Shown one piece after another: positions 1,489 through 14,579 of a stretch of 64,000 bases of DNA. The notes beneath the pieces are model-generated. The model did not search any database. It was not told where the DNA came from and saw only the letters and a program-made list of their open reading frames with translations. The position numbers and the translations under genes were made by a program. Where the stretch lies: the sequence record NC_048054.1, one strand, 5' to 3'. Numbering within the stretch: position 1 is the stretch's first letter; each line of letters opens with the position of its first letter.

Positions 1489-2514
1489 TTATTCCTTCAA
1501 TACACCGCCAATCTCCGCAAACATATTTTTGTAGACCAATGAGCCATCCAGCTTATCCAATCGTTCCGCCTGAACATAAAGTCTAGGTGATGTGCGCATG
1601 TTCGCCCACGTCTTTTCATTACGATCAAGTCCACCAAGCATCGGGACAATGACCATACTGAGATTCCTATTTGCTCTGACGAAACCTATGTCAATATGCT
1701 TCCTGTTTATGCTTATGAACAGTCTATTGATTGCGTCCAAACCAACAGGCCGATTGAATTCCGTGTCACTGACAGTATTGACTAAGCTAATGAGAAACCC
1801 TCTCTCCTTGCTTTCAATTTCAAACAGGTCTGCTTTCAAATCACCAACAGTTGACGCAGAGTAATACGACACGTCATGGCCATAGTCTTTGAGGCAAGCA
1901 CCTAGCGTACGGGCTGATTCAATGTGCGCTACGTTATCATCTCGCAGGATATAGACAGGAGCATCGGACTGATATGTCTTCTGCGCAATCATGCTGATAA
2001 GATCGCAAGAGGGCTTGCCTACAGTGGCCAAACCCTTATTGGCGACAAAGAATTTGTCACGATAAACATCATACACGTTTGGTGGCATGTACTTCATGTA
2101 ATCATCGTCCAGGCTAAGTATCACGCGAGGCTTAGTTAACTGGACGACGAGTTGCATACTGCGAAGTGATGCCTTGTACTCCGTGTCAGATAATACGCGA
2201 CTAATAGGCAGATACTGCACGACAACAAATCGGTCATCAATTGAATCGACAACCGAGCGTATCAGCGTACTGCCTAACGTAGGCCCAGCAGAGAATTGGG
2301 TAACGATCATTAGGCCATCTTCCACTAAGCCTTTCGACTCAGCGAGCGTCATGCCGTTACCTGTCTGCTTTACCGCGCGCTCCCACGTTATTGAAGGTTC
2401 GTCTCGGCTTTCGGCGTGTACAGAAGCTGCGCCGTACCAGAGACAGGCTCCAAGAATGTAAGCAGCAATACGTTGTCTGGATCGGCTTCGGCTGGAGTAA
2501 CAGTTTCCGGCCAT
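1489..2514 (-). CDS. Secreted/periplasmic protein, ABC substrate-binding/periplasmic-sensor-like fold
   Basis: GAGGAG SD 7 nt before the ATG. Sec-type signal (RSRSRQR-IAAYILGACLWYGAA-SVHA/ES). Segment KPRVILSLDDDYMKY resembles the KPDxIIxxDDxA motif of COG2984-like sensor domains. Confidence 0.55.
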   Translation of the reverse strand: MAGNCYSSRSRSRQRIAAYILGACLWYGAASVHAESRDEPSITWERAVKQTGNGMTLAESKGLVEDGLMIVTQFSAGPTLGSTLIRSVVDSIDDRFVVVQYLPISRVLSDTEYKASLRSMQLVVQLTKPRVILSLDDDYMKYMPPNVYDVYRDKFFVANKGLATVGKPSCDLISMIAQKTYQSDAPVYILRDDNVAHIESARTLGACLKDYGHDVSYYSASTVGDLKADLFEIESKERGFLISLVNTVSDTEFNRPVGLDAINRLFISINRKHIDIGFVRANRNLSMVIVPMLGGLDRNEKTWANMRTSPRLYVQAERLDKLDGSLVYKNMFAEIGGVLKE

Positions 2515-3212
2515 AGAACTTCTCCTCTCTCGTCAGTGACGTAAGGAATGCCGTTGCCTTTGCCCAATCCATGACGCAAAGCCCAAACGGTATCGGCATT
2601 CTCCTGCACGAACACTAACCCTTTTGTTTCTGGCTCACCCGCACTGTCTTCAAGTGCTGTAACACGCGCCGTAAGAAGCTGTGCATCAGTCTGAATAGTA
2701 CGAATGGCGCTAAGGTTAGAGTTAACGCGCTGGTTCATGTTGTTGAACATGGTGAAGAACGAATTGTTCATCGCCGTGCGAACGCCGTCCGTATAGGACT
2801 TAGGAATCAGTTCGTCGTTATCGTAGGTTGTTACACCTGAGCGCACAAGAACTTTACCGGTAAGACGTCCACCACTTGCGCTGATAATCTGAGGGGCTGG
2901 CAAATCAGCTTCGTCCCAGACTTGAACAGTGGTCATCACCGTATTGTAGTCGGTCTCTTCCTGCCACGTATTTCTATAAGGAGCTGTGGCAGTTTTGGAT
3001 TTACGACGCATCACCTTTTTATAGTTAGCGCTCGTACCGTCCGCGATAATCCAGAGACCGTTCAGTGGGAAAACGCGAGTGTAAGGCTCGGCGAATGCTA
3101 AGATGATCGTCACATCAGCACTTACCTTATACACAATATCGTTCGACGCTGACAGTCCTTGCTGTTGTGCAAGACTAATCAACGTGTCCACGTAGTTAGT
3201 CAACTGGCTCAT
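2388..3212 (-). CDS. Virion/tail-associated protein with C-terminal small beta domain
   Basis: AGGAG SD. C-terminal WALRHGLG..PYVTDERGE..DNVLLLTFLEPVSGTA matches the common phage W-x-I-x-H-N-L-G type module. Confidence 0.7.
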   Translation of the reverse strand: MSQLTNYVDTLISLAQQQGLSASNDIVYKVSADVTIILAFAEPYTRVFPLNGLWIIADGTSANYKKVMRRKSKTATAPYRNTWQEETDYNTVMTTVQVWDEADLPAPQIISASGGRLTGKVLVRSGVTTYDNDELIPKSYTDGVRTAMNNSFFTMFNNMNQRVNSNLSAIRTIQTDAQLLTARVTALEDSAGEPETKGLVFVQENADTVWALRHGLGKGNGIPYVTDERGEVLWPETVTPAEADPDNVLLLTFLEPVSGTAQLLYTPKAETNLQ

Positions 3213-3672
3213 CCGAGACTCCTAACGATTGAAGAATAATAGAACTTTTATCGGAGAAGGCCTTAGCGATCAGTTTGGCAGCAGCCTTATCGACAACGAG
3301 TGTGCTGATTTTCCCTTTGGTGTTGCACACAATAGTCTGCGGAGCAAACTGCGCACAAGCCAAAGCAAATAGCAGATGGTTGCCTAAGTCACCAGAGATG
3401 CTAATCTCAACGCCAAGTTCTGGCACTGAGATGTTCTGGTTGATTTCGGCAACGAACTGCGCCAGCACCACAGGGTCGATTTCAGGAGGCGCTGTATCAT
3501 ATCCTTCGACAAGATCAATCTGACCAGTAGAAGGGTCAAACGCGAATGCAGATGGGTCGCCAATGATTCTGCCGAATAGCTCGTCACTGACTTCAATGCA
3601 ATCGTCGTCTGTCTTCTCGCGCACACGACCAATGACTGCGTTCGTGGCGCGATTGATTTTGATTATCGGCAT
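3196..3672 (-). CDS. Putative tail-fibre assembly chaperone (158 aa)
   Basis: Follows a fibre gene; start moved to the ATG at 3672 (AGGTG SD, 1 nt after the upstream TAA); size and position typical of Tfa-like proteins. Confidence 0.5.
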   Translation of the reverse strand: MPIIKINRATNAVIGRVREKTDDDCIEVSDELFGRIIGDPSAFAFDPSTGQIDLVEGYDTAPPEIDPVVLAQFVAEINQNISVPELGVEISISGDLGNHLLFALACAQFAPQTIVCNTKGKISTLVVDKAAAKLIAKAFSDKSSIILQSLGVSDEPVD

Positions 3673-3673
3673 A

Positions 3674-4495
3674 TTAATCACCTACCGCAGTATACCAGAA
3701 GTCCCAGCCAGCAGTGTTGGTGCCAGTAGACTTGATGGTGAAGCCGCCTAACAGGGCGTTCTCATTCATCGCGCTTGTACCATCCAGATTGTAGAGCTGG
3801 TAGGTCTTCGCTTGGTTGAGTGCAGCGTTCACAAAGGTAATCTGAATGCTGATACAACGGTTGATGAATGCCGTGTTAAACACAACATGAATTGTGTCGG
3901 TAGTTGATGCGTTCACGACTCGACCCATGTTATGAGTAAAGCCAGTGTTCATATCGCGGTTGCTACCAATCCATGCGTTCGGTATCACTGCACCGGTAAC
4001 AGGGTTGAGCGCTTGAGACACACGATACTCGTCAATAGCAGCATCGCGGCCTGGGCTACCAGTAGGTCCTGTTGCACCCGTAGGGCCGACAGCACCAGTG
4101 TTACCTGTAGCACCTACAGGGCCTGTGTTACCTGTAGGACCGTTACGTCCACGAGGCCCACGAGGTCCTGGACAGCCGTCTTCACCGTCGCGACCATCAC
4201 GACCATCAGCACCAGGGAGGCCACGCAGACCTTCTTTACCCTGTTTACCTTCACGTCCTGATTTAAGCTGGTCGGCAGTAGGCAAACCAATCACACTCGA
4301 TTGACTGCCATCAGGCCAGATGACTGTTAGCGTACCTGTAGTTGTGTCGAACTCAACACCCTGAGAGCCGGGAATCTTTGCAGCCTCTGCTGGGTCGATA
4401 AACGCAACAGCGGTCGCCGTCTTCTTACCTAACACTTTACCGACAGGCGAAGCACCGCCGTCGATAAGTGCAGGATTAATCTTCGTAAGAGACAT
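3674..4495 (-). CDS. Collagen-like fibre protein A (24 Gly-X-Y triplets) with C-terminal beta domain
   Basis: GREGKQ...GSPGRD triplet run; shared N-module FDTTTGTLTV..GLPT. Confidence 0.85.
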   Translation of the reverse strand: MSLTKINPALIDGGASPVGKVLGKKTATAVAFIDPAEAAKIPGSQGVEFDTTTGTLTVIWPDGSQSSVIGLPTADQLKSGREGKQGKEGLRGLPGADGRDGRDGEDGCPGPRGPRGRNGPTGNTGPVGATGNTGAVGPTGATGPTGSPGRDAAIDEYRVSQALNPVTGAVIPNAWIGSNRDMNTGFTHNMGRVVNASTTDTIHVVFNTAFINRCISIQITFVNAALNQAKTYQLYNLDGTSAMNENALLGGFTIKSTGTNTAGWDFWYTAVGD

Positions 4496-4506
4496 GGGCT
4501 AAACTC

Positions 4507-4710
4507 CTAACCAGTCAGTGTTGTCCAATCTGGTTGACCCGATTGTCCGGCCTCAGGATTTTTAACTTTGGTGTTGTTGATTGTCATGCGAACCCAACGC
4601 ACACTTCCATCTGAATCCTGATACCGAACCTTCGTTCCACCATACGCTAAATTAGCTACCCATCTGTCTCTGCTTGGGTCTTTGAATGCTAAACGTGCAT
4701 AAGCTGGCAT
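4507..4710 (-). CDS. Small fibre adaptor-like protein (67 aa, three Trp-ended repeats)
   Basis: Closely packed between fibre genes; repeats resemble the N-terminus of 7637..9661. Confidence 0.7.
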   Translation of the reverse strand: MPAYARLAFKDPSRDRWVANLAYGGTKVRYQDSDGSVRWVRMTINNTKVKNPEAGQSGQPDWTTLTG

Positions 4711-4719
4711 ACGCTCTCC

Positions 4720-7593
4720 TTAACTGTCAATCTCGTCTGGCTCCCAGCACAGGATAGGACGGCGCCACACTTGGAATACGCCTTGAGGACTAGCGAGCCC
4801 ATCGAAGCAATCCATAGTTGTACCACCTGAGTTGCCGCTTTTCATCAGCGTCTGCAAGTCTTGATACCAAGATGCACGGCCACCAGAGTCAGCTTCAAAC
4901 AATCCTTCCCATACCATATCGAAAGCGCCTTTCCACGCATTGAAGTGGTGAGAAGAAACAGCACCGTCTTCCGTTGTACACAATACCATGTACTGATAAT
5001 CCTTCACACACGGAATCATGTAGTTGTTACCGCGTGGCATTGTCGTACTGTTATTGTTGAAGATACATTCCCAACCAGTACGGTCAGCAGCGCCTGTCGT
5101 CAGGAACAGCGGACGACGGATGATCATCATGATGCCGTTTTCTGTACCGCCATTCTTCGATTTCTCGCAGTACGCATTACAACGGAACGCTCGGTCAACG
5201 GTGAACGTCGTTGAGTTCGAGAAGTCTCGGTTATAATAGTTAGCGCCCCACTTAGGCAGATATTCGGTAGGCGGTACGAAGAAATGACGCTCTGCAAGTT
5301 CAACCTCACCGTAGCGATCATACGCAAACACGATGTATTCATAGCCAGGCGCAATGGTAATGTTGTGGCCCTGAGTACCAACCCCGTTCCACTTCCAGAC
5401 AACCTGCCAGTCATTCGAATCACGCGATGCTTCTTCGGTAATGAGCTGATACTTACGCTCATAGATGTGCCACACTTTCCCTTCTTCTGTGGTGTTGATG
5501 TACAACGAGTTCGGGTCATTGATATTCCCGTTCTCAGTGCCGCAGTAAATCTTATGCGACGCACCAGCAGAGTTATAGATAGTGCCGGACCCGATTGAGC
5601 CAAACATATCCCAATTCATCATCAGGTGAGAGGTACACATTTCGTTCTGGCCGCTACCGTCCGACGTTGTGACAAGATATTCACAGAGGTCCTTGAACGG
5701 ATATTTAACGTAGCGATTGTTCGCACGGTTAACAACGTGAACCCAATCGTGGGACTGAATCTTAGGCACAGGGAAGCATGGGTTAGTTACGGAAACAACG
5801 AAGGTCTTTGTCTCGTACATAGGCAGCTTCTTGAAACGGTTATCCCTAATCGTAACAGTATGCTGCATACCCATTGTCGAAGCACCATCCTGAGAGCCAA
5901 GCACTTTGTAGTAGCGCAGATGACTGCTCTTGGTGTTTTCGAACAGGCCATTGAGCGCCATGCTCATGTTACCTTCGCGGTCTGTGCCTGTCACGTATGG
6001 GAAGCCATTCGTATCGAAGTCATAGCCGACAGAGAAGTAACTGTCAGTATCAGATGACTTGGCACCACGATACATTTCATTCCACGCGTTACCCTCACCA
6101 ATACCAGGCTCACCGAACAGTGAGTATGCAGCACGATACACGTATTGCGATCCTGCGTACACACGACGCGATGCACCGATGCGATACATGGCTTGAGGCA
6201 GACCGCCCTGCAGTCGGTTAACGTCGGCTGTATCGTATGACACAACGTAGACGTAATGGTCAGAGCCGATAGAGTTCAGGAAAGCCGCACATGCCTGAGC
6301 ATTCGCAACGCCTGGGTTAGTTCCTTCGGCCGATGCGTGAATGTCAAATGTACGACGCTCCACCAGCGCAAGGTCAGACTTACGAATCTTATAAACGTTC
6401 CAGCCACGAGTATCGGTGTAGCGGGTACCGTTAAAGATCGTGTAGCCTGTATCTCCTGTGTCCAGATAACGCTGATAGCCTACAACGTGAGAGAAGATTC
6501 GGCTACGCGCTGCAAGCGATTGAGCATTCTCGTTTGACCAACTAACAGACACGTCACCCGCAGCCATACGTGCTGCCCAATCGTCAGGCTTGTATGGATA
6601 TGTTGTGACGTCGAAGTCTACCTGATATGCAGAGCCAGGTTCGACGCAGCACTTATCACGATAGATAAGAGGCGGGTCAAGGATAACGTCATCGGAGATA
6701 TCAACCTGTCCGCAATAGAACTGACGCCATGTGCCAGGCTGGCCACCGATAGTACCTGGACCTGCTTGAGTGGTTCCTGTGAACTGATACGCGGCAGAGA
6801 CTTCGAAGTTGATTTGGTTATGCAACTGCACAACGTTAGTCCAAGATACGTGGTTGCCGAACGCGTTAATGCTTTTGTTCTTTGCTGCGACAGTGGCCGC
6901 AATATATGCTTGGCCATTGCTGCGAATACCGAGTGGGTTGAAGATCGCATTGAAGTTTACGTTACCTTCATACGGACCTTTCTGCAACACAATCAGGCTA
7001 ACACCATTACGATGCGCTTCACGCAGAGCAGTAAGCATCTGAGTAGGCATACTCTGGTTGGTAGCAGACAGCAGAAGCATTACGCAACTGAACTGTTTGA
7101 AATACTTGTACGTACCATCGTAACCATACGCACCAGCGTTAATCTCTTGCCAGCTATGTGCCAGCATGTCGAGAGGGATGCGCTGCATATACGCAACGAG
7201 TTGTCCCCACGACTCCATTGCAGTGTCATCATTGACAGGTGCAAGGTCTGATATGACAAGCATGGTGCTGCCATATGTGATGTTCGAGTTGTAGCCGCGT
7301 TGTGTCAACAGGTGACGCAGCACACCCATGTTGTTAATGCTCTTATTGCGGTAGTTACCGAGCCAACCGTAGTTAGCATCAACAAGAGGACTACCGTCAC
7401 GGACGAATCGACCATTCATGTAGACAGAGCCGAAGCCGCATACGTATGAAAGAGCATGACCATCAACAACAAAAGAGGTGAAGCGTGAGCTATCAACTGC
7501 CATAGCGTCTACTGCGGTAATAGAGCCATCGCCAGGACTACCGCTAAATACAGGCGTAATGCCTCGCGCATACAAGCAGCTTTGTTGCAGCAT
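4720..7593 (-). CDS. Large putative receptor-binding protein with ILEI/PANDER (GG-lectin-like) domain and three C-terminal repeats
   Basis: 957 aa. RTFDIH..AAFLNSIGSDHYVYVVSYD..YRAAYSLFG fits ILEI/PANDER. Three W-x-x-V...RRP/ERK repeats at the C-terminus. Confidence 0.65.
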   Translation of the reverse strand: MLQQSCLYARGITPVFSGSPGDGSITAVDAMAVDSSRFTSFVVDGHALSYVCGFGSVYMNGRFVRDGSPLVDANYGWLGNYRNKSINNMGVLRHLLTQRGYNSNITYGSTMLVISDLAPVNDDTAMESWGQLVAYMQRIPLDMLAHSWQEINAGAYGYDGTYKYFKQFSCVMLLLSATNQSMPTQMLTALREAHRNGVSLIVLQKGPYEGNVNFNAIFNPLGIRSNGQAYIAATVAAKNKSINAFGNHVSWTNVVQLHNQINFEVSAAYQFTGTTQAGPGTIGGQPGTWRQFYCGQVDISDDVILDPPLIYRDKCCVEPGSAYQVDFDVTTYPYKPDDWAARMAAGDVSVSWSNENAQSLAARSRIFSHVVGYQRYLDTGDTGYTIFNGTRYTDTRGWNVYKIRKSDLALVERRTFDIHASAEGTNPGVANAQACAAFLNSIGSDHYVYVVSYDTADVNRLQGGLPQAMYRIGASRRVYAGSQYVYRAAYSLFGEPGIGEGNAWNEMYRGAKSSDTDSYFSVGYDFDTNGFPYVTGTDREGNMSMALNGLFENTKSSHLRYYKVLGSQDGASTMGMQHTVTIRDNRFKKLPMYETKTFVVSVTNPCFPVPKIQSHDWVHVVNRANNRYVKYPFKDLCEYLVTTSDGSGQNEMCTSHLMMNWDMFGSIGSGTIYNSAGASHKIYCGTENGNINDPNSLYINTTEEGKVWHIYERKYQLITEEASRDSNDWQVVWKWNGVGTQGHNITIAPGYEYIVFAYDRYGEVELAERHFFVPPTEYLPKWGANYYNRDFSNSTTFTVDRAFRCNAYCEKSKNGGTENGIMMIIRRPLFLTTGAADRTGWECIFNNNSTTMPRGNNYMIPCVKDYQYMVLCTTEDGAVSSHHFNAWKGAFDMVWEGLFEADSGGRASWYQDLQTLMKSGNSGGTTMDCFDGLASPQGVFQVWRRPILCWEPDEIDS

Positions 7594-7607
7594 GTTATGT
7601 CCTTAGA

Positions 7608-7631
7608 TCGAGAAGAGGGGCCGAAGCCCCT
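7608..7631 (-). terminator. Hairpin AGGGGC-TTCG-GCCCCT, probable terminator (weak U tail)
   Basis: Perfect 6-bp stem with C(UUCG)G loop just after the 7637 stop. Confidence 0.55.
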
Positions 7632-7636
7632 ATATG

Positions 7637-9661
7637 TTATTCAAATACTACGTTGGTGATGCCCAGATAGTCTAGATCGTTCGAGTCGCCGCGGTCGCCG
7701 CCGCCTTGAACACGAAGCCAGATTTCTTGGCCTACAGGTATGTTCACGTCAAACGTGAAATACTGATAGACACCACTACTGTTTCTCGGAGACTGTGCTG
7801 CGCCTTCGCCAGCAGTTCGCTCGTAGATATCAATAGTATGCCAACCACCATTCCTGCCGTCGTACACCCAGACGAAAGTGATCTGCTTAATCGGCTTAGT
7901 GAAGAAGTTACCCCACTTGAACCAACCATTCACACCACCCCAGATGTTCATGTAGTTACCGTCGCGTGTCCACACAGGAGAAGCATCAGGGCGACCAGTA
8001 CCACGACCACCTGTCTGTTCCCATGCGTTTGGCTGCCACGGCAGAACGTCTGAATCTGGCGGCTGATCGTTACCACCTTCAATTGTTACGCAACGATAAG
8101 GAACGGTGAAGTCACTTACGTTAATCTTAGGCGGTTGAATAGGACAGTACACGAAGTACGACCAATCACATCCGATAGGAGCTGTCACTCGCACAGTGAT
8201 GTTAGAGCGCAACACATGCTCAGGGTATTTCCAAAATTCGAGTGTACCAGTCTTGCCCGCAGCAACGATAGAAGTATCGAGTACGTTCATGTCTTGGTCA
8301 AACACTTCGAACTTGGTATCGAACGAGTTCGCAACACAAACAACAAGCTCGGCGCGAATGTCCGACTGAGTTCCTAACGCAAAATTATCTTCTGTGGTTG
8401 GATGCCCGGCAGAGTATACGCTGTAGCTCTGGCATGGGTGCATGTATTCACGCGCACCACGTTCACCTGGACAGTACAGACTGTAGAAGCAACTCGCAAG
8501 CGATGCAGCATTACCAAAGTCCTTACTGACCACGCGCACCATGATATCACACGCAACGCCTTGAGGGTCAAAGTAGAAATACAGATAACCCTCACCAGTA
8601 CGCGCATCAAGCGTTGTGGCGATACGACGACCAGACTGATAGACCTCAATGAAGTCGAACGTTTCCCATGAGGTGTAATCGAGATACATCCAACCCGCTG
8701 TCCAACCAATGAAGTGATAGTATTCGAAAGCGTTAGCATTCTGAATACGTTCCGCGATAGGCCAAACAGTTGCATGGCACGGCGCAGGGAAGATTGGGCT
8801 GCCGATGTAGTCTGGATGAATGACGTCAGGGAAGTTGATAACGTCATACGCGGCCTGACTATCGAGAGCTAATCCACCACGGTCAGAAGGTGCTGCGAGG
8901 CGCGGCGGATATACTTCTAAACTCCAGCCGTATCCCTGAGTTGTACGCACACGCACCATGATACGCATATCAGCAGCGTCAGGGTCGAACTGGAATTTGA
9001 TACGCGAGCGACCAGCCAGCTTACCACACGTCGATGCAACACGCACACCCATATGGTACACGTCAACACTCGCACCAGCTGGCGCATAGGACGCGATCAT
9101 CAGCTCAACGTAACCTTCGATTGCTGGCATTGCATAATACGTCTCGGTGATAACAGCACCACGCCCATGAACAGAAGCGTAAGGCACGTTAGGGTTAGCG
9201 TAAGTGCCTAGCCCTGCGCGAGAAGCAACACCAGTAGGGTCGTATGATTCGATGGTCTTGATGCCGGGTCTATTGATAGATCGACCAGTAGGAGGAGAAA
9301 AAGAGTTGATAAGACCGAAGCCAGTGCGACCAGCATCAGGCAAATCGAACCCCGCAGGATAGCCTTTGAGGATATCGTATTTCTCACGACCGCCACTCCC
9401 TATCCCGTTACCAGAACCTTTGGTAGTTGACGTCGGTCCGCCGCCACATGCACCCGTCTCAAGGTTTGAGCACGGGTCATCATAAGTAGGGTCGAAAGAG
9501 TCGTTGATGTGCATCCAACTCTTTCCCCACTGATTACGCACACTGAATTTGTCTGGGCTTAATGGTGTCCAGTCTCCTGCATGTGTGCGTATGAACATGG
9601 GCGTGTCCACGCAGTCAAGCCAACCGTTATTCGCAGCATTACGAACGCGAAAACGAGCCAT
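7637..9661 (-). CDS. Fibre-associated protein with three internal beta-sandwich repeats and a C-terminal carbohydrate-binding-like domain
   Basis: 674 aa; repeats ending MVRV..W/FxYxxYxP three times; N-terminal R-x-R..W triple. Confidence 0.7.
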   Translation of the reverse strand: MARFRVRNAANNGWLDCVDTPMFIRTHAGDWTPLSPDKFSVRNQWGKSWMHINDSFDPTYDDPCSNLETGACGGGPTSTTKGSGNGIGSGGREKYDILKGYPAGFDLPDAGRTGFGLINSFSPPTGRSINRPGIKTIESYDPTGVASRAGLGTYANPNVPYASVHGRGAVITETYYAMPAIEGYVELMIASYAPAGASVDVYHMGVRVASTCGKLAGRSRIKFQFDPDAADMRIMVRVRTTQGYGWSLEVYPPRLAAPSDRGGLALDSQAAYDVINFPDVIHPDYIGSPIFPAPCHATVWPIAERIQNANAFEYYHFIGWTAGWMYLDYTSWETFDFIEVYQSGRRIATTLDARTGEGYLYFYFDPQGVACDIMVRVVSKDFGNAASLASCFYSLYCPGERGAREYMHPCQSYSVYSAGHPTTEDNFALGTQSDIRAELVVCVANSFDTKFEVFDQDMNVLDTSIVAAGKTGTLEFWKYPEHVLRSNITVRVTAPIGCDWSYFVYCPIQPPKINVSDFTVPYRCVTIEGGNDQPPDSDVLPWQPNAWEQTGGRGTGRPDASPVWTRDGNYMNIWGGVNGWFKWGNFFTKPIKQITFVWVYDGRNGGWHTIDIYERTAGEGAAQSPRNSSGVYQYFTFDVNIPVGQEIWLRVQGGGDRGDSNDLDYLGITNVVFE

Positions 9662-9670
9662 GACTTCTCC

Positions 9671-10162
9671 TTACGGTCTTACCCAGATGGCACCTGGCGC
9701 AATCTCATTATCAATAGCAGGGTCGGTGTCTTGCACGAACACCTGTACTGTACCTGGGTTACCTGGGGCACCAGTTGGGCCAGTAGGGCCTGTCGGACCA
9801 GCAGGACCACGATTACCTACGTAACCTTGCTTCCCCTGTAGTCCATCATTACCACGAGGACCAGGACAGCCATCAGTACCACGACGACCATCGCTACCCA
9901 TGAGACCGTCAATACCGTCACGACCAGCAGGCCCAACGCCGCCGGCAGGACCGTAACCGATGCTATGAATAGTAGGTAGCCCAGATATCTGGAGCTTGCC
10001 GATAGTAGGGATGTTGATAGACAGAAGACCTGTAACCGCATCAAATGCCCCGCTAAGTTGGCTATCGTCTTGCGTAGTGTCAACTGTGATTCCCCCTTCG
10101 GTCGCTACGACAGGACCAGAAGCATTGGCCTTGACTAGCGATATATCAACTTTTTCTACCAC
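9671..10162 (-). CDS. Collagen-like fibre protein B (~23 triplets)
   Basis: Gly-X-Y run, shared N-module, C-terminal PGAIWVRP motif. Confidence 0.85.
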   Translation of the reverse strand: MVEKVDISLVKANASGPVVATEGGITVDTTQDDSQLSGAFDAVTGLLSINIPTIGKLQISGLPTIHSIGYGPAGGVGPAGRDGIDGLMGSDGRRGTDGCPGPRGNDGLQGKQGYVGNRGPAGPTGPTGPTGAPGNPGTVQVFVQDTDPAIDNEIAPGAIWVRP

Positions 10163-10171
10163 GTTGCCTCC

Positions 10172-10804
10172 TTATGGCCATGTGATATTCTGATCTTTGG
10201 TAGGGTCCACCCAGATCGTGCCAGCAGCAACGTTCCCTGGGTTAGTAGCACTGACGATGATAGACAGGCGTCCAGCAGGACCTGCAGGGCCGGTAGGACC
10301 CGTTGGTCCTGTAGAGCCAGTAGCGCCTGTCGGACCAGTACCGCCACGAGGACCAGTAGGACCAGTAGGACCCATAGGGCCTGTTCTACCATCTGGGCCA
10401 GTAGGACCAACAGGACCGGGTAGTCCGTCACGCCCGTCTGGCCCAGGGATACCTTGCTCACCATCTGGGCCCACAGGACCAGTACATCCAGGCTCACCTG
10501 GATTACCATCGCGACCATCTCGTCCGTCTTTACCATCAGCGCCTGTCTCTCCTCTTCCGCCCTGACGACCTTCTGGTATATCAGCAGCAGTAGGGAAACC
10601 GCCCACCTTAACTGTCTGCCCGTTAGCAAACTTGAGAGTAAGAATACCCGAAGTTGCATCGAACGACGAATCAGCAGTTACCTCTGAGGGAACCTGTTCG
10701 TCGCTAGGGTCTATCGAGAGAACCCCAGACTGAGCGCGAATCGCAGTAGGCGTAGACGAAGAACCAGCCTGAATGAGACCGGTCTTAACTTTAATCAGAC
10801 TCAT
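10172..10804 (-). CDS. Collagen-like fibre protein C (34 triplets)
   Basis: Gly-X-Y run rich in GPT; C-terminal AGTIWVDP motif. Confidence 0.85.
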
Positions 10805-12243
10805 TACTTTTTCTCCGCTTTCGCAACAATATCCGTGTTGTGTGCGAGCACATCACCAACGAAATAACAATCAAATGGATCAACGTCGATATCAACAGTT
10901 TTCACCAGATTATCTACGCGGCGAAACTCGTACACAGACACAGGTCCCTTACGACCTAGCACTGTATTCCCAGGCTGTACGTCACGCGCAGGGATATAAC
11001 GCCATACGCTATCGTCATACACAAGCACTGGATGTTCGTGTGTGAACTTCTGGCCGTTGATAACGAAGTAATGATCTTCTTCGCCATACTTCAAACCGAC
11101 AACAGTAGCGTTCACCAGATTACCTTTTAGGCTAGGCGAAGACCACTGACGGAAGTTCTTCGGCTGGTTAGAGAAACTCAGCAGGCTATCACCTACACGT
11201 AAGTCCTCGACAGCTTTAGGTCCTGTAATAGTTTCGACAACAGAACCAAACACAATACAGCCAGACGTTGAGCTTGTAGGGTTACGTGCAACAACTGTCA
11301 GCGCAGAACTCACGGTAACAGTAGGGCGTGAGGGTTGGCCCATGTCAGTCACTACGCAACGAATAGTGCCTTTGATTGTACGATCAGCACCAAGTCCGAG
11401 ACGCAGATAGAAGTTAACAATACACGTTGAGGTATCAGTAGCGCCAAGCGTTACGCCCTCAGTGGTTGTGATAGACCATTGATACTTATATGGACCTATA
11501 CCACCACGTGCATTGACAGGAAGGTATGCAAGCGAAGTAAATACATCAGAGCCTTGCACTGCACGTTGACCTACCATGTACAGGTTAGACACTGACGCAG
11601 CAAGAGGCGTTATAGTAGGCAGAGGCGGTGCTGGCGTAACGTTGGCTGTAGGGTACAACCAAACGAACACACGACCGTCTGTAGGCTGCGTGTTAGACTG
11701 AACAGCAGTTGTAATAGGCGCTGGGCCAGTAGGACCTGTAGCACCAGAGATACAGCTTGCGCCAGTAGCACCACGAGGACCGATGTTCCCTGTAGGACCG
11801 GGAGGACCGTCTGGACCAGTAGGACCGTCTGGACCTTGACGCCCAGTATCACCAGGAGGACCGTCTTCACCGTCGCGTCCTGGGTCACCAACAGGGCCAG
11901 TCTTACCTTTAGAGCCAGGGCCACCTTCGCAGCCCTGTCTACCTGTCTCACCGTCTCGACCATCACGTCCGTCACGGCCGGGAGCACCTGGAGCGCCGCG
12001 ACGCCCAGGCTTCCCTTCACCGAACATAGCAATAGTAGGAAGTCCGGGGACGTTCACTACTTCCCCGTTCTTCTTGATGAACACCAACACGCCTGTCTTG
12101 CTGTTAAACCTTACGCTTGCGATTTGAGTATTCGTCGCTAAGTCCGTAGACTCAAACTCGACGCTACCATCAACACCAACCAGCGACTTACCTTCATCGT
12201 TAGCGGTTGTTTCGATTTGCGAAAGTTTTAACTGTGTTGTCAT
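10804..12243 (-). CDS. Collagen-like fibre protein D with Ig-like domain and C-terminal Hint/intein domain
   Basis: 29+3 triplets, an Ig-like segment ([11 protein letters not shown]), then a Hint domain C329-N469. Confidence 0.85.
10837..11259 (-). other. Hint (mini-intein / bacterial intein-like) domain, 141 aa, no homing endonuclease
   Basis: Block [21 protein letters not shown]; block B FTHEHP; block F TVDIDVD..YFV; block G LAHN followed by Thr. Confidence 0.85.
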
Positions 12244-14579
12244 TTCGGTTCAACCTTAATGCACAAGTTACCCGACAGCTTCGATCCGTAGCTTGTAATC
12301 TGCGCGTTAACGATACGCACCTTAGCAACGATATCAATGAAGCCTTGAGGTTGGTTTTCTATCAGCACCGTGAACATCTGCGTCAGGCTGACGTTTGAAT
12401 ACGCAATAACTTCTGTCAGGCTTGCATCAGAAGTAACGACGTTAAAGCCCGCGCTACCAGTGCCTTTCAGGCCGCGACCGTATTCAGCTTCGGAGGTACC
12501 AGGCACCTTGAACGACAGAACGTATTCAAGATGTTCTTTACCGCTGGTGGCAGCAAAGCCTGGGCCGAGTTGACACTGGAAGTCAGCGACACACGTAAGC
12601 ATGACGCCTTTCTTGAACTCAATACGTTGCTGAATAACCAGCTCTTCCGAGTCGTCCGCATTCTGCTGAATGTTGTACATGTTGCGTGGGTCAGCTTCTT
12701 CGGCGAGAGCCTGAGTGTTACGAATCGTAATCTCTGGCCACTTACCAGTAATCTGAATGCCCTCACCCTGAATGATCTCAGGAGCAGCTATAGGCACGTC
12801 GATAGGAGGCAGACCTTGACGCTTGAACATGTAACCAGTCGGTGTAGGGATAGCGTCAATGATAACACCGTCAACCGAACTGTCTTTCGAGCCTACTGCC
12901 ATGACGTTCTCAAAGATTGTGATCTCAATGAGTGTGTCGGCAGGAATAGGCGACAACGTTTTCAGCACATTGCCAGTTACTGTGAAGTCCTGCGTGTGTA
13001 CTGTCAGGCCGCTCATGGCCATAACGCAGTGCGACTTATTCAGCGGAGTAGTTGGCAGAACAAATGTATCAGCATCATAAGGCAGGCGATACTGAGCAAC
13101 ACGAATACGAGTAGACCAGTTGGCGCGTTCTTCATAGCGAGCTACATAGAATGTGTACTTCTGACCTGACGGGATCGCTTCGGTTAACGTTACGCTGTTA
13201 CCATTCGTGAGTTTATACACGGTGGTAGGCTGCCACGTTGAACCGACGACACAGAATATCATGTCAACGCTATCAATCGGTTTGCTGCCGAGTTTAAACA
13301 GTGCAGTCTGGCCATCGCCGACACCCTCGTATGTTTCAAACAGGACAACATGGCCCTGAGAAGGCTCAACGCGGAACTGACGCATATCGAGCTGCATACG
13401 CTGTTCAGGATAGGACGAAAGCAGAAGCTGATCGTCAACGACACTGTATGCAGTACGTGGCTGGAGAACACCAGACGTGCCAAGCAACAGGTCGGTCGAG
13501 CTATCGAGAATCTCAGACAGCGTATAGCGCAGCTTATCAGGCGTTGCTGTAGTCACAACAGAACTGAATAACAGTTTGCCTGGAGGAACAAACAGCGTAC
13601 CAGTTGTCTGACGAGTACCACCAGCAACAGGTCCCCAATAAGGCTGCAAGTCTTTGCCTCTGTACAATGCCCACGCTTCTGGTACATCGTTATTCAGTGG
13701 CCACGGAATGCCAGCAGACGGAGTTGTTGGGTTAGTGATGCGTCGCCACACAGCGATAGTTGTCTGTGCGCTAACGAATGGAATCGCGCTGTCCATGTTG
13801 ACCAGTTGACCATTCGTGTATTTGAAGTGACGACATGCGCCGGCGCCTGTGCCAGAGATTGTCTGAATCAGAACAACCTCGTTAGCTTTCAACACTGAGG
13901 ACAGCGAAGCAATCTTGAACGTGTTTGCGTTGATGAAACCTGCGGCAGTAATCTGTCCGCTGAACACACGGTCATGCTCGCTGAAAGCCCAATAGTATGA
14001 GCCTTGTCCATAACGATATGCAGTACCTGGAGAGCGAGTGCCGTCCGAGTTAACGTGCATATCAAGAACCGACACGGCATTGAACACGTTATCGCTCAAG
14101 CTCGGCAGATTCTGGAGCGTTGCCACACTCGGTATAGAGGTGTAGTCCGCCATTTTCACAGCAAGAATCTTTTGGATGTCCTGCTGAATATGTACGAGAA
14201 GGCTAACGCGATTGATAGAGTTTGGTACGGCGATGATAGGCTCTTGTAGAACAACGTGACCAAAAGGTCGGTTGTCAGAGAGCATGATCAACAGCTCACC
14301 AACTCGTTTCAGTGCTTCACCTGCAACGTAGTTGACTTTAATATCAAAGATAAAGCGGGCGCTGTTCTCGGTAAGAACCTGAACATACGACAATGCGCCC
14401 GACGCAAGCTCGCTGCCAAGTAACTGCTCTGGAACCACAGACGGGTTAGAGCCAACAAAGTCACCTGCTTTAAACGACACTGGCTGAACAGCAAGTCCAC
14501 CAGCGTTAGCGTTCGCAACGGCCTGTTCTCCCTGAGGCGTTAGACGCAATGCGTCAACGTAGATAGATTCAGTGGCCAT
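12240..14579 (-). CDS. Baseplate/tail-collar fibre-anchoring protein (779 aa)
   Basis: N-terminus [21 protein letters not shown] resembles the P2 gpH-type tail-collar domain. Three GDGxTxxFxL-type repeats. Start at ATG 14579 (AAGGAG SD). Confidence 0.65.

Follow-up and report, generated by a model that had tools for sequence, protein, structure and literature searches.

Four collagen-like fiber genes in the AD1 genome

The window, the whole stretch of DNA analyzed here (64,000 nucleotides of sequence record NC_048054.1), is 100% identical to Dickeya phage vB_DsoM_AD1 (AD1), a 'hairy' jumbo myophage. Dickeya, the host of AD1, is a potato pathogen. Only four collagen runs are found in the entire 261,658-bp AD1 genome, all of them encoded on the minus strand between positions 3,674 and 12,243 of the window. 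The four proteins (A, B, C and D) all carry the same N-terminal module (N-module).

Fiber A (gp102, 273 aa; 3674..4495) consists of the N-module, a 6-residue linker, 24 Gly-X-Y triplets and a gp53-like C-terminal domain, whose match to PF21882 is weak and lies under the cutoff of that profile. In fiber B (gp106, 163 aa; 9671..10162), 23 triplets come after the N-module and linker, and the protein ends in a 24-aa tail with the motif xVFVQ..DP...G.IWVRP. Fiber C (gp107, 210 aa; 10172..10804) has 34 triplets after the N-module and linker and ends in a 30-aa tail of the B type. Fiber D (gp108, 479 aa; 10804..12243) contains, after the N-module and linker, 29 triplets, a Cys residue in place of a Gly, 3 more triplets, the tail motif of B and C, an Ig-like region, and a probable Hint domain at its C terminus. 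These collagen lengths (24, 23, 34 and 29+3 triplets) are those given in the original prediction. The stop codon of D and the start codon of C overlap (TAATG).

All four proteins match the collagen triple-helix repeat (PF01391) with scores of 51–55 bits, against a cutoff of 27.2 (E=1.3e-14 for A). They also match phrog_8745 (tail fiber), with E values of 8e-26 to 7e-39, over a region that spans both the N-module and the collagen repeats, and D matches phrog_38766 (E=1e-255). A conserved block of genes encodes PAAR, gp25-like and gp6-like proteins, a 1511-aa tail protein and a 780-aa fiber, and then D, C and B. A–D are paralogous fibers, presumably trimeric, from the baseplate/tail-fiber module of AD1. 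The list of protein bands for phage PaBG does not contain these small proteins (PMC7412058). A virion proteome of AD1 was not found in the literature.

A single cysteine in a fixed register

The N-module carries the signature F[DN]xx[TS]GxL, followed further on by G[LF]PT, exactly 6 residues, and then the Gly-X-Y repeats. The tenth triplet of each protein has a Cys in the X position: Cys108 of A (GCP, codon TGT; 4172..4174), Cys99 of B (GCP, TGT; 9866..9868), Cys107 of C (GCT, TGT; 10484..10486), and Cys105 of D (GCE, TGC; 11929..11931). This shared arrangement had been noticed earlier and is confirmed in all four reading frames, the only deviation from the motif being a Ser in place of Thr in C (FDATSGIL). 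The N-modules contain no Cys, and this is the single Cys of both B and C. D has another, Cys164 (11752..11754), which replaces the Gly of triplet 30 and is kept in the D class. As it occupies a Gly position, Cys164 should be near the helix axis.

The original prediction had made its case depend on conservation of the triplet-10 Cys in orthologs. The residue is kept in 74 of 78 orthologs from 20 AD1-related phage loci, with both TGT and TGC codons in use, and in 157 of 165 module-bearing representatives (clustered at 90% identity), in which the linker is always 6 residues. Among 44 orthologs from 11 phages, the entropy of this column is 0.16 bit, compared with 0.73 bit for the next-lowest X/Y column and roughly 1.5 to 3.3 bit for the rest. 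The Cys is near-invariant down to about 25–35% sequence identity. No other Cys occurs in any of the 35 B-class proteins or in 44 C-class proteins, and its column is invariant in an alignment of 29 B-class sequences. Immediately below it, at triplets 4–7, is a conserved ladder of Arg and Asp residues.

The exceptions are few. The short D proteins of JA11-like phages have GNT as their tenth triplet, and the B ortholog of locus L015 contains no Cys. In protein P0314 the Cys is at triplet 9, in protein P0310 and in D of two metagenome loci it is at the X position of triplet 29, and two proteins show a shift of one residue. In loci L016 and L017, D has lost the triplet-10 Cys and its supposed partners have kept theirs. 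Such single losses from D (JA11-like, L016/L017) or B (L015), with the partners unchanged, indicate that any links made by this residue are not strict one-to-one pairs.

The length of the rod is also fixed for each paralog. The histogram of triplet counts has peaks at 23, 24, 33 and 34, and B has 23 and C has 34 triplets wherever they could be read in related loci. A rule by which one rod is exactly 10 triplets longer than another was considered and dropped: it is true of AD1-like phages only, and the invariant B and C differ by 11. When viral and metagenome contigs were scanned for more relatives, most hits were collagen genes from outside the family, and only loci L030–L033 and L052–L055 contained family members; a match in a contig labeled as human-gut metagenome (L085), which is not human DNA, is to an unrelated collagen and was left out. 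Literature searches found no published account of this register rule.

Co-evolution of C and D

The first nine triplets of C (10490..10570) and of D (11935..12015) form stems whose net charges are opposite in sign and vary together. Across 20 loci the Spearman correlation between the two charges is -0.80, and with phylogenetically independent contrasts r is -0.86 (p<0.0001). The signs of these contrasts are opposite in 15 of 17 cases and the same in 2. Extreme pairs have charges of -8/+7, -6/+7, and +4/-5. Co-variation of stem charge is not significant for the other five pairs among A–D. The compensation is limited to triplets 1–12, with rho of -0.87 at triplets 4–6; past triplet 13 there is none, despite strong variation of D at triplets 16–18. 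In locus L016 the Lys residues of the D stem are mainly at Y and the Asp and Glu residues of the C stem mainly at X. In AD1 itself, each chain is almost neutral and self-complementary, with GRD triplets.

A second Cys, in the X position of triplet 20, is shared by C and D in 6 loci, is absent from both in 15, and never occurs in only one of them. This pattern requires at least three changes on the tree. The D and C genes are adjacent, so block transfer could add to the concordance. C and D are moreover equal in length, with 6 residues plus 34 triplet equivalents between G[LF]PT and the tail motif. Taken at the level of sequence, the charge compensation, the concordant Cys at triplet 20 and the equal length are new evidence that supports contact between C and D. 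The suggestion that the paralogs assemble with each other is thereby strengthened for this pair. Its end-to-end version is not favored: the same N-terminal anchor on all four fibers and the equal length of C and D point to a parallel arrangement.

Structural considerations

In an ideal triple helix, computed with generally known helix parameters, the Cβ atoms of X residues in neighboring chains are about 8–9 Å apart, and the thiol group should therefore face outward. A disulfide or metal knot within one triple helix, as first proposed for this Cys, is disfavored by this geometry.

Structure predictions give little detail for the non-collagen parts. An AlphaFold2 model of the B monomer (pLDDT 61) shows only an extended chain with small β-hairpins, and a model of the C N-module based on 89 sequences (pLDDT 70) contains only small β-hairpins. 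Two short strands are predicted in the tails of B and C. A Foldseek search against the PDB found no meaningful match, nor did a wide VIA-align search (best Z score 2.9). The N-module has no match in the Pfam or PDB sequence profiles, and the ESM Atlas was blank.

A probable Hint domain in D

The intein-like Hint domain of D (residues 329–469; 10837..11259) is followed by a 10-aa tail. It has the expected signature residues (C329, a THEH block, and HN468-469), with profile scores of 26.4 bits for PF07591 (cutoff 27.7) and 19.4 bits for PF13403 (cutoff 28.4), both under the cutoff. True protein splicing requires a nucleophile (Cys, Ser or Thr) at position +1; AD1 has Thr there, and the orthologs of fHe-Yen9-02, Afa-NA1 and NCTB have Val, Met or Ala. 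Since these latter residues are not nucleophiles, cleavage rather than splicing seems likely for this domain, judging from its sequence. The absence of both the Hint domain and the triplet-10 Cys from D of JA11-like phages raised the idea that this Cys is the thioester acceptor of the Hint domain of the same chain. The idea was ruled out, as the Cys persists in PaBG-type D and in the short D protein P0076, both of which lack a Hint domain, and also in fibers A, B and C of JA11.

A proposed stalk of parallel fibers

We propose that the fibers are parallel homotrimers packed into a charge-zippered stalk and stapled by putative inter-fiber disulfides at triplet 10, and we assign this arrangement a probability of roughly 0.45. 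Each fiber would dock through its N-terminal adaptor of about 70 residues, probably built of β-hairpins, and continue through the 6-residue linker into a rod (fixed at about 20 nm in A and B and at about 29 nm in C and D) that ends in a small C-terminal hairpin or tip. The first ten triplets or so (about 8 nm) would form a common stalk, in which the fibers run alongside one another in the same direction, with their registers matched, and are held together by complementary charges. For C and D the side-by-side packing is suggested by their co-evolution. The charges of A and B do not co-vary with those of any paralog, and it is the shared register that would place them in the bundle.

The Cys of triplet 10, exposed to solvent in its X position, would mark the top of the stalk. 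Outside the reducing cytoplasm, this residue would most likely form disulfides between adjacent triple helices and thereby staple the bundle. In PaBG-like lineages, C and D together may have a second rung exactly 10 triplets higher. A collagen helix of the 10/3 type completes one supercoil turn over this distance, which would place the second Cys on the same face as the first. Virion assembly takes place in the reducing cytoplasm, which counts against a disulfide-linked stalk.

The charge compensation would be explained almost as well if chains of C and D wound together into a single helix, a heterotrimer (C2D or CD2) selected by charge, with the Cys residues of triplets 10 and 20 inside that helix and A and B forming similar heterotrimers or homotrimers. 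C and D share their length, N-module and tail motif, their genes are translationally coupled, and the placement of Lys at Y in D and of Asp/Glu at X in C in L016 is that of designed heterotrimers. However, the compensation ends after about triplet 12, and C does not respond to the strong changes of D at triplets 16–18. Only D is interrupted by a Gly-to-Cys change at triplet 30 and carries large extra C-terminal domains, C of some phages acquires C-terminal domains of its own independently, and the nearly neutral chains of AD1 are complementary to themselves. The X-to-X disulfides would require distortion of the helix, and the 1-nt overlap of the genes suggests that C and D are made in about equal amounts and not at a 2:1 ratio. 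We consider a C/D heterotrimer unlikely, if still a serious alternative. The need for distortion applies equally to a disulfide between two chains of the same homotrimer, which would serve as a mid-helix staple for register or thermal stability and leave the third thiol free or available to link trimers, as in the oligomers of C1q and adiponectin. In a homotrimer the Cys residues of the three chains, one in each, do lie at the same level, and animal collagens with Arg-to-Cys mutations can make chain dimers within the helix. The spacing of 8–9 Å would nevertheless demand a local kink, such a staple has no need of the same height in four paralogs of unequal length, and it leaves both the joint triplet-20 Cys of C and D and their charge compensation unexplained; it is highly improbable.

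The invariant distance from the N-module to the Cys in all four paralogs, and the Arg/Asp ladder below this residue, would also fit a plug, made of the N-module and the first ten triplets, that enters a socket in a non-collagen virion protein. The contact between the Cys and the socket would then be a disulfide, a metal bridge or thiol packing; alternatively, the Cys would be a site of covalent modification. Candidates for the socket are the Cys-rich gp105 (674 aa), the 780-aa fiber, and a sheath or baseplate protein. The gene for gp105 adjoins that for B, and at least seven of its Cys residues are kept in 13–16 of 16 gp105 sequences, but the neighboring 780-aa fiber lacks a universally conserved Cys. 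A common socket does not predict co-evolution of opposite charges that is specific to C and D, and we regard this reading as quite unlikely. Overall, the stalk of side-by-side homotrimers is the arrangement that we prefer.

Comparison with other collagen-like and fiber systems

The proposed stalk would be similar to those of C1q, the collectins and the ficolins, in which several parallel, in-register triple helices share an N-terminal end, with a Cys-cross-linked stalk of about ten triplets and arms bearing C-terminal heads beyond it. The A, B and C chains of C1q are likewise paralogs that co-assemble. These are animal proteins, however, with gC1q, lectin or fibrinogen heads, none of which is found in A–D by Pfam, and no homology of A–D to them is detectable. 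The Cys residues of these animal proteins are in a short non-collagen N-terminal segment, whereas that of A–D is at an X position of the helix. In the 7S region of collagen IV, four triple-helical molecules join laterally through their N-terminal 30 nm or so, with intermolecular disulfides and one Cys inside the helix. This structure differs from A–D in belonging to the metazoan basement membrane and in having partly antiparallel overlaps, lysine-derived cross-links, and no shared adaptor. The cystine knot of collagen III is made by two adjacent Cys residues at the helix end of each chain; A–D have instead a single Cys in mid-helix, plus that at triplet 30 in D.

Other collagen-like tail fibers of phages and surface proteins of bacteria (phi24B gp61; PHROG 'collagen like minor tail') are also trimeric Gly-X-Y shafts that are rich in Thr and charged residues and lack hydroxyproline. 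To our knowledge, the length of these other collagen shafts is freely variable and they have no fixed Cys. In comparison, A–D have both length and Cys register frozen in lineages with identities down to 25–35%, and two of the paralogs co-evolve in charge. Fibritin, which forms the whiskers of phage T4, follows the same general plan: it is anchored at its N terminus and has a long trimeric rod that ends in a C-terminal β-hairpin unit of about 25–30 residues. Its rod is an α-helical coiled coil, however, and neither sequence nor reliable structural similarity to A–D was found. By analogy, the tails of B and C might be foldon-like. In designed heterotrimers, oppositely charged Gly-X-Y chains pick each other, and the complementarity of the C and D stems is comparable. 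Those systems are synthetic, whereas the compensation between C and D is confined to the first 12 triplets or so and is perhaps between helices.

Implications for 'hairy' phages

The proteins that form the fibers of 'hairy' jumbo myophages are unassigned in the literature (PMC6143709). A–D are four candidates for these 'hair' proteins, with a concrete proposal for their architecture. Should C and D instead form an obligate heterotrimeric collagen, selected by charge and pinned by in-register Cys residues, which we doubt, chain-selective collagen assembly would have arisen independently in a virus. We know of no natural heterotrimeric collagen outside animals, and C/D would be the first.

The collagen repeats of bacteria and phages are usually viewed as spacers of variable length. 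In the AD1-type collagens, length, register and one thiol are frozen over deep divergence while charges compensate each other, which amounts to a natural experiment in helix recognition. If the stalk of stapled homotrimers is correct, viruses would have an equivalent of the stalk of C1q or of the 7S region of collagen IV, and the fibers would provide simple sequence rules for the engineering of self-sorting, covalently stapled collagen assemblies that are free of hydroxyproline.

Architecture and gene neighborhood of the four fiber proteins

Positions 3000–13000 of the window match Dickeya phage vB_DsoM_AD1 (NC_048054, 261,658 bp; record position is window position x + 62000) at 100% identity. 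AD1 is a jumbo myophage of the "hairy Myoviridae" morphology, for which its authors regarded the hair-forming proteins as unknown and the annotated tail-fiber proteins as candidates (PMC6143709). Four collagen-rod proteins, gp102 (A), gp106 (B), gp107 (C) and gp108 (D), are encoded on the minus strand within the baseplate/fiber block. This block comprises a PAAR spike, a gp25-like protein, a gp6-like wedge protein, a ~1500-aa tail protein, a ~775-aa fiber, D, C, B, a 674-aa protein, a 957-aa ILEI-domain protein, a 67-aa protein, A, a 161-aa protein and a 274-aa protein, an order common to Erwinia, Dickeya, Yersinia and Pseudomonas (PaBG) phages and metagenomic relatives. The D and C genes are coupled by a TAATG overlap. 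At the end of the block, gp100 (2388–3212, minus strand) is annotated as an HNH endonuclease. Pfam has no match for it, tail-protein PHROGs match its N-terminus as well, and the annotation looks doubtful. The records of Alcaligenes phage Afa-NA1 (locus L009, 78 kb) and Salmonella phage Sen-NF (H77, 108 kb) carry the jumbo-phage fiber block, are far below jumbo-genome size, with genes missing between them, and may be partial or chimeric assemblies.

The open reading frames bear out the original description of the four proteins. Each has an N-terminal β module (N-module) with the motif F[DN]xx[TS]GxL ... G[LF]PT, then exactly six residues and an uninterrupted Gly-X-Y repeat whose 10th triplet has Cys at X. 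The rods of A, B, C and D (4043–4258, 9746–9952, 10265–10570 and 11755–12015; minus strand) contain 24, 23, 34 and 29 triplets, and the Cys codons are at 4172–4174, 9866–9868, 10484–10486 and 11929–11931 (minus strand), respectively. The rod of D is interrupted at triplet 30, where Cys stands in place of Gly, and then resumes for three triplets. These are the only collagen runs in the AD1 genome, and all four carry the N-module, with pairwise identities of only 25–31%. The proteins belong to the collagen-repeat family PF01391 and to PHROG tail-fiber families. GPT and GAT triplets dominate the distal rod halves, whose abundance of Thr at Y resembles that of glycosylated bacterial collagen-like proteins. 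Tandem copies of the N-module's core hairpin ([FY]DxxTGxLTL...) also occur in P0296 (1071 aa) and P0285 (722 aa), two long surface proteins of apparently bacterial origin, alternating in P0296 with short collagen runs of 6 triplets.

Directly after the rod, B, C and D share the motif x[IV]x[IV][SQ]..P....G..W/V..P (9674–9745, 10175–10264 and ~11644–11715; minus strand), which is the very end of B and is followed by only about ten residues in C. AF2 predicts two short strands here, and the motif may be a putative foldon-like trimerization unit. D ends in a probable Hint (intein-like) domain (residues 329–469; 10837–11259, minus strand), in which Cys1, a THEH block and a closing HN are recognizable, and a tail of 10 aa. 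At position +1, AD1 has Thr but other phages have Val, Met or Ala, and this variability suggests self-cleavage rather than splicing. The D ortholog of phage JA11 ends exactly where the Hint domain starts, so that the mature D proteins of the two phages may be alike.

Conservation of the cysteine register

All collagen open reading frames were extracted from 10 related phage genomes and, later, from 10 metagenome/MAG loci. The four paralogs are present in every phage as far as its contig extends. The Cys register is nearly invariant: the triplet-10 Cys is kept in 74 of 78 proteins across the 20 loci, with both TGT and TGC codons in use, and in 157 of 165 module-bearing cluster representatives (90% identity) from large protein collections, all of which have the six-residue linker. 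Among 44 orthologs, the entropy of this X column is 0.16 bit, compared to 0.73 bit for the next-lowest X/Y column and ~1.5–3.3 bit for the remainder. It is the sole Cys in all 35 B-class and in 44 C-class proteins. A profile of the four N-modules matched only 48 cluster representatives among 1.84 billion proteins, and the family is thus small and specific.

Three apparent exceptions are explained by Gly-to-Ala interruptions, with the register intact. In the others, the short, Hint-less D of JA11-like phages has GNT at triplet 10, the Cys lies instead at triplet 29 X in D of loci L016 and L017 and in protein P0310, B of locus L015 has no Cys, P0314 has it at triplet 9, and two proteins show a one-residue shift.

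Rod length is likewise constant within each paralog. B has 23 and C has 34 triplets in every readable related locus, A has mostly 24–25, and D has 29 plus the interruption; triplet counts over all family members peak at 23, 24, 33 and 34. From G[LF]PT to the common tail motif, which for this pair reads x[IV]x[IV][SQ]..P....G..[WV]W/V..P, C and D are equal (6 residues and 34 triplet equivalents). At 0.286 nm per residue, the calculated rods are ~20 nm (A, B) and ~29 nm (C, D) long.

Geometry of the thiols

X side chains of a collagen helix face outward. With a rise of 2.86 Å, 103–108° between neighboring chains and a Cβ radius of 4.5–6 Å, the three triplet-10 Cys residues of a homotrimer are calculated to be ~8–10 Å apart, about twice the Cβ distance of a disulfide. 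Of the linkages originally proposed, a metal knot on the helix axis or a disulfide within one undistorted helix is therefore unlikely, and the partner of this Cys should lie outside the helix. A staple between chains of one trimer would also leave the common register and the C–D data (see below) unexplained, and we consider it very unlikely. The second Cys of D, Cys164 (11752–11754, minus strand), is placed near the helix axis and may knot the chains of the trimer together at the interruption. Members of the D class retain it, JA11 and PaBG among them; L016 and L017 have a Cys at triplet 29 X instead.

Co-variation between C and D

Several sequence features suggest contact between C and D. In one subclade (PaBG and loci L012, L013, L014, L015 and L020), both C and D have a further Cys at triplet 20 X. 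In 15 loci neither protein has it, and A and B lack it throughout. Well-supported branches in the tree of the neighboring ~775-aa protein force at least three changes of this state, and block exchange of the adjacent D and C genes may contribute to the concordance. A 10/3 collagen helix completes a supercoil turn in 30 residues, which would put the two Cys residues on one face.

The net charges of the stem (triplets 1–9) of C and D are anticorrelated (Spearman ρ = −0.80, n = 20), with C/D pairs such as −8/+7, −6/+7, −4/+7 and +4/−5. Independent contrasts give r = −0.86, with opposite signs in 15 and the same sign in 2 (p < 0.0001); a common base composition would make the correlation positive. 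Two added loci (20–22 in the comparative sample) follow the trend, L030 with −3/+6 and L054 with 0/−6. Stem-charge contrasts are not significant for the five other pairs among A–D, where the AD1 values of A and B were misentered, leaving C–D unaffected. By segment, ρ is −0.45, −0.87, −0.68 and −0.49 for triplets 1–3, 4–6, 7–9 and 10–12. The correlation is not significant at triplets 13–21 and 25–27 and marginal at 22–24 (ρ = −0.45, p = 0.045). The charge of D is nonetheless strongly variable at triplets 16–18. The compensation is local.

A possible stalk of parallel trimers

The opposite charges, equal lengths and coupled genes of C and D could also be accounted for by a heterotrimer of the two. 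However, the compensation ends after triplet 12, D has features of its own, and the AD1 chains are each nearly neutral, which makes this arrangement rather unlikely. Contact of the triplet-10 Cys with a non-collagen partner or a metal, or a modification of it, is unlikely. A candidate here is the Cys-rich gp105 adjoining B (7637–9661, minus strand; 674 aa), a possible redox or metal partner for the fibers. Of its 13 Cys, at least 7 are kept in 13–16 of 16 aligned sequences; the 780-aa neighbor has no conserved Cys.

Our leading reading, held at a probability of roughly 0.45, is a charge-zippered stalk of parallel trimers with putative inter-fiber disulfides at triplet 10. A–D would be trimeric struts that dock through their homologous N-modules, with the first ~10 triplets in register. 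For C and D this is supported by the co-variation of their sequences, while A and B are placed in the stalk because the register is common to all four. The absence of charge co-variation of A and B with any paralog, and the loss of the Cys in single paralogs, weaken the stalk reading. The closest working likenesses are the stalks of C1q and the collectins and the 7S domain of collagen IV. A–D belong to neither: their Cys is inside the helix, they have neither a gC1q nor a lectin head, and homology could not be detected. Monomer fold predictions were of low confidence and gave no structural match, and a literature search found no description of the triplet-10 register or of C–D co-evolution.

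In such a stalk, the exposed Cys residues at its top would form inter-fiber disulfides once the virion meets an oxidizing medium, and PaBG-like phages would have a second C–D rung ten triplets higher. Prokaryotic collagen-like repeats are seldom so rigid in length, and this unusual rigidity points away from loose hairs and toward A–D being struts in a defined architecture.
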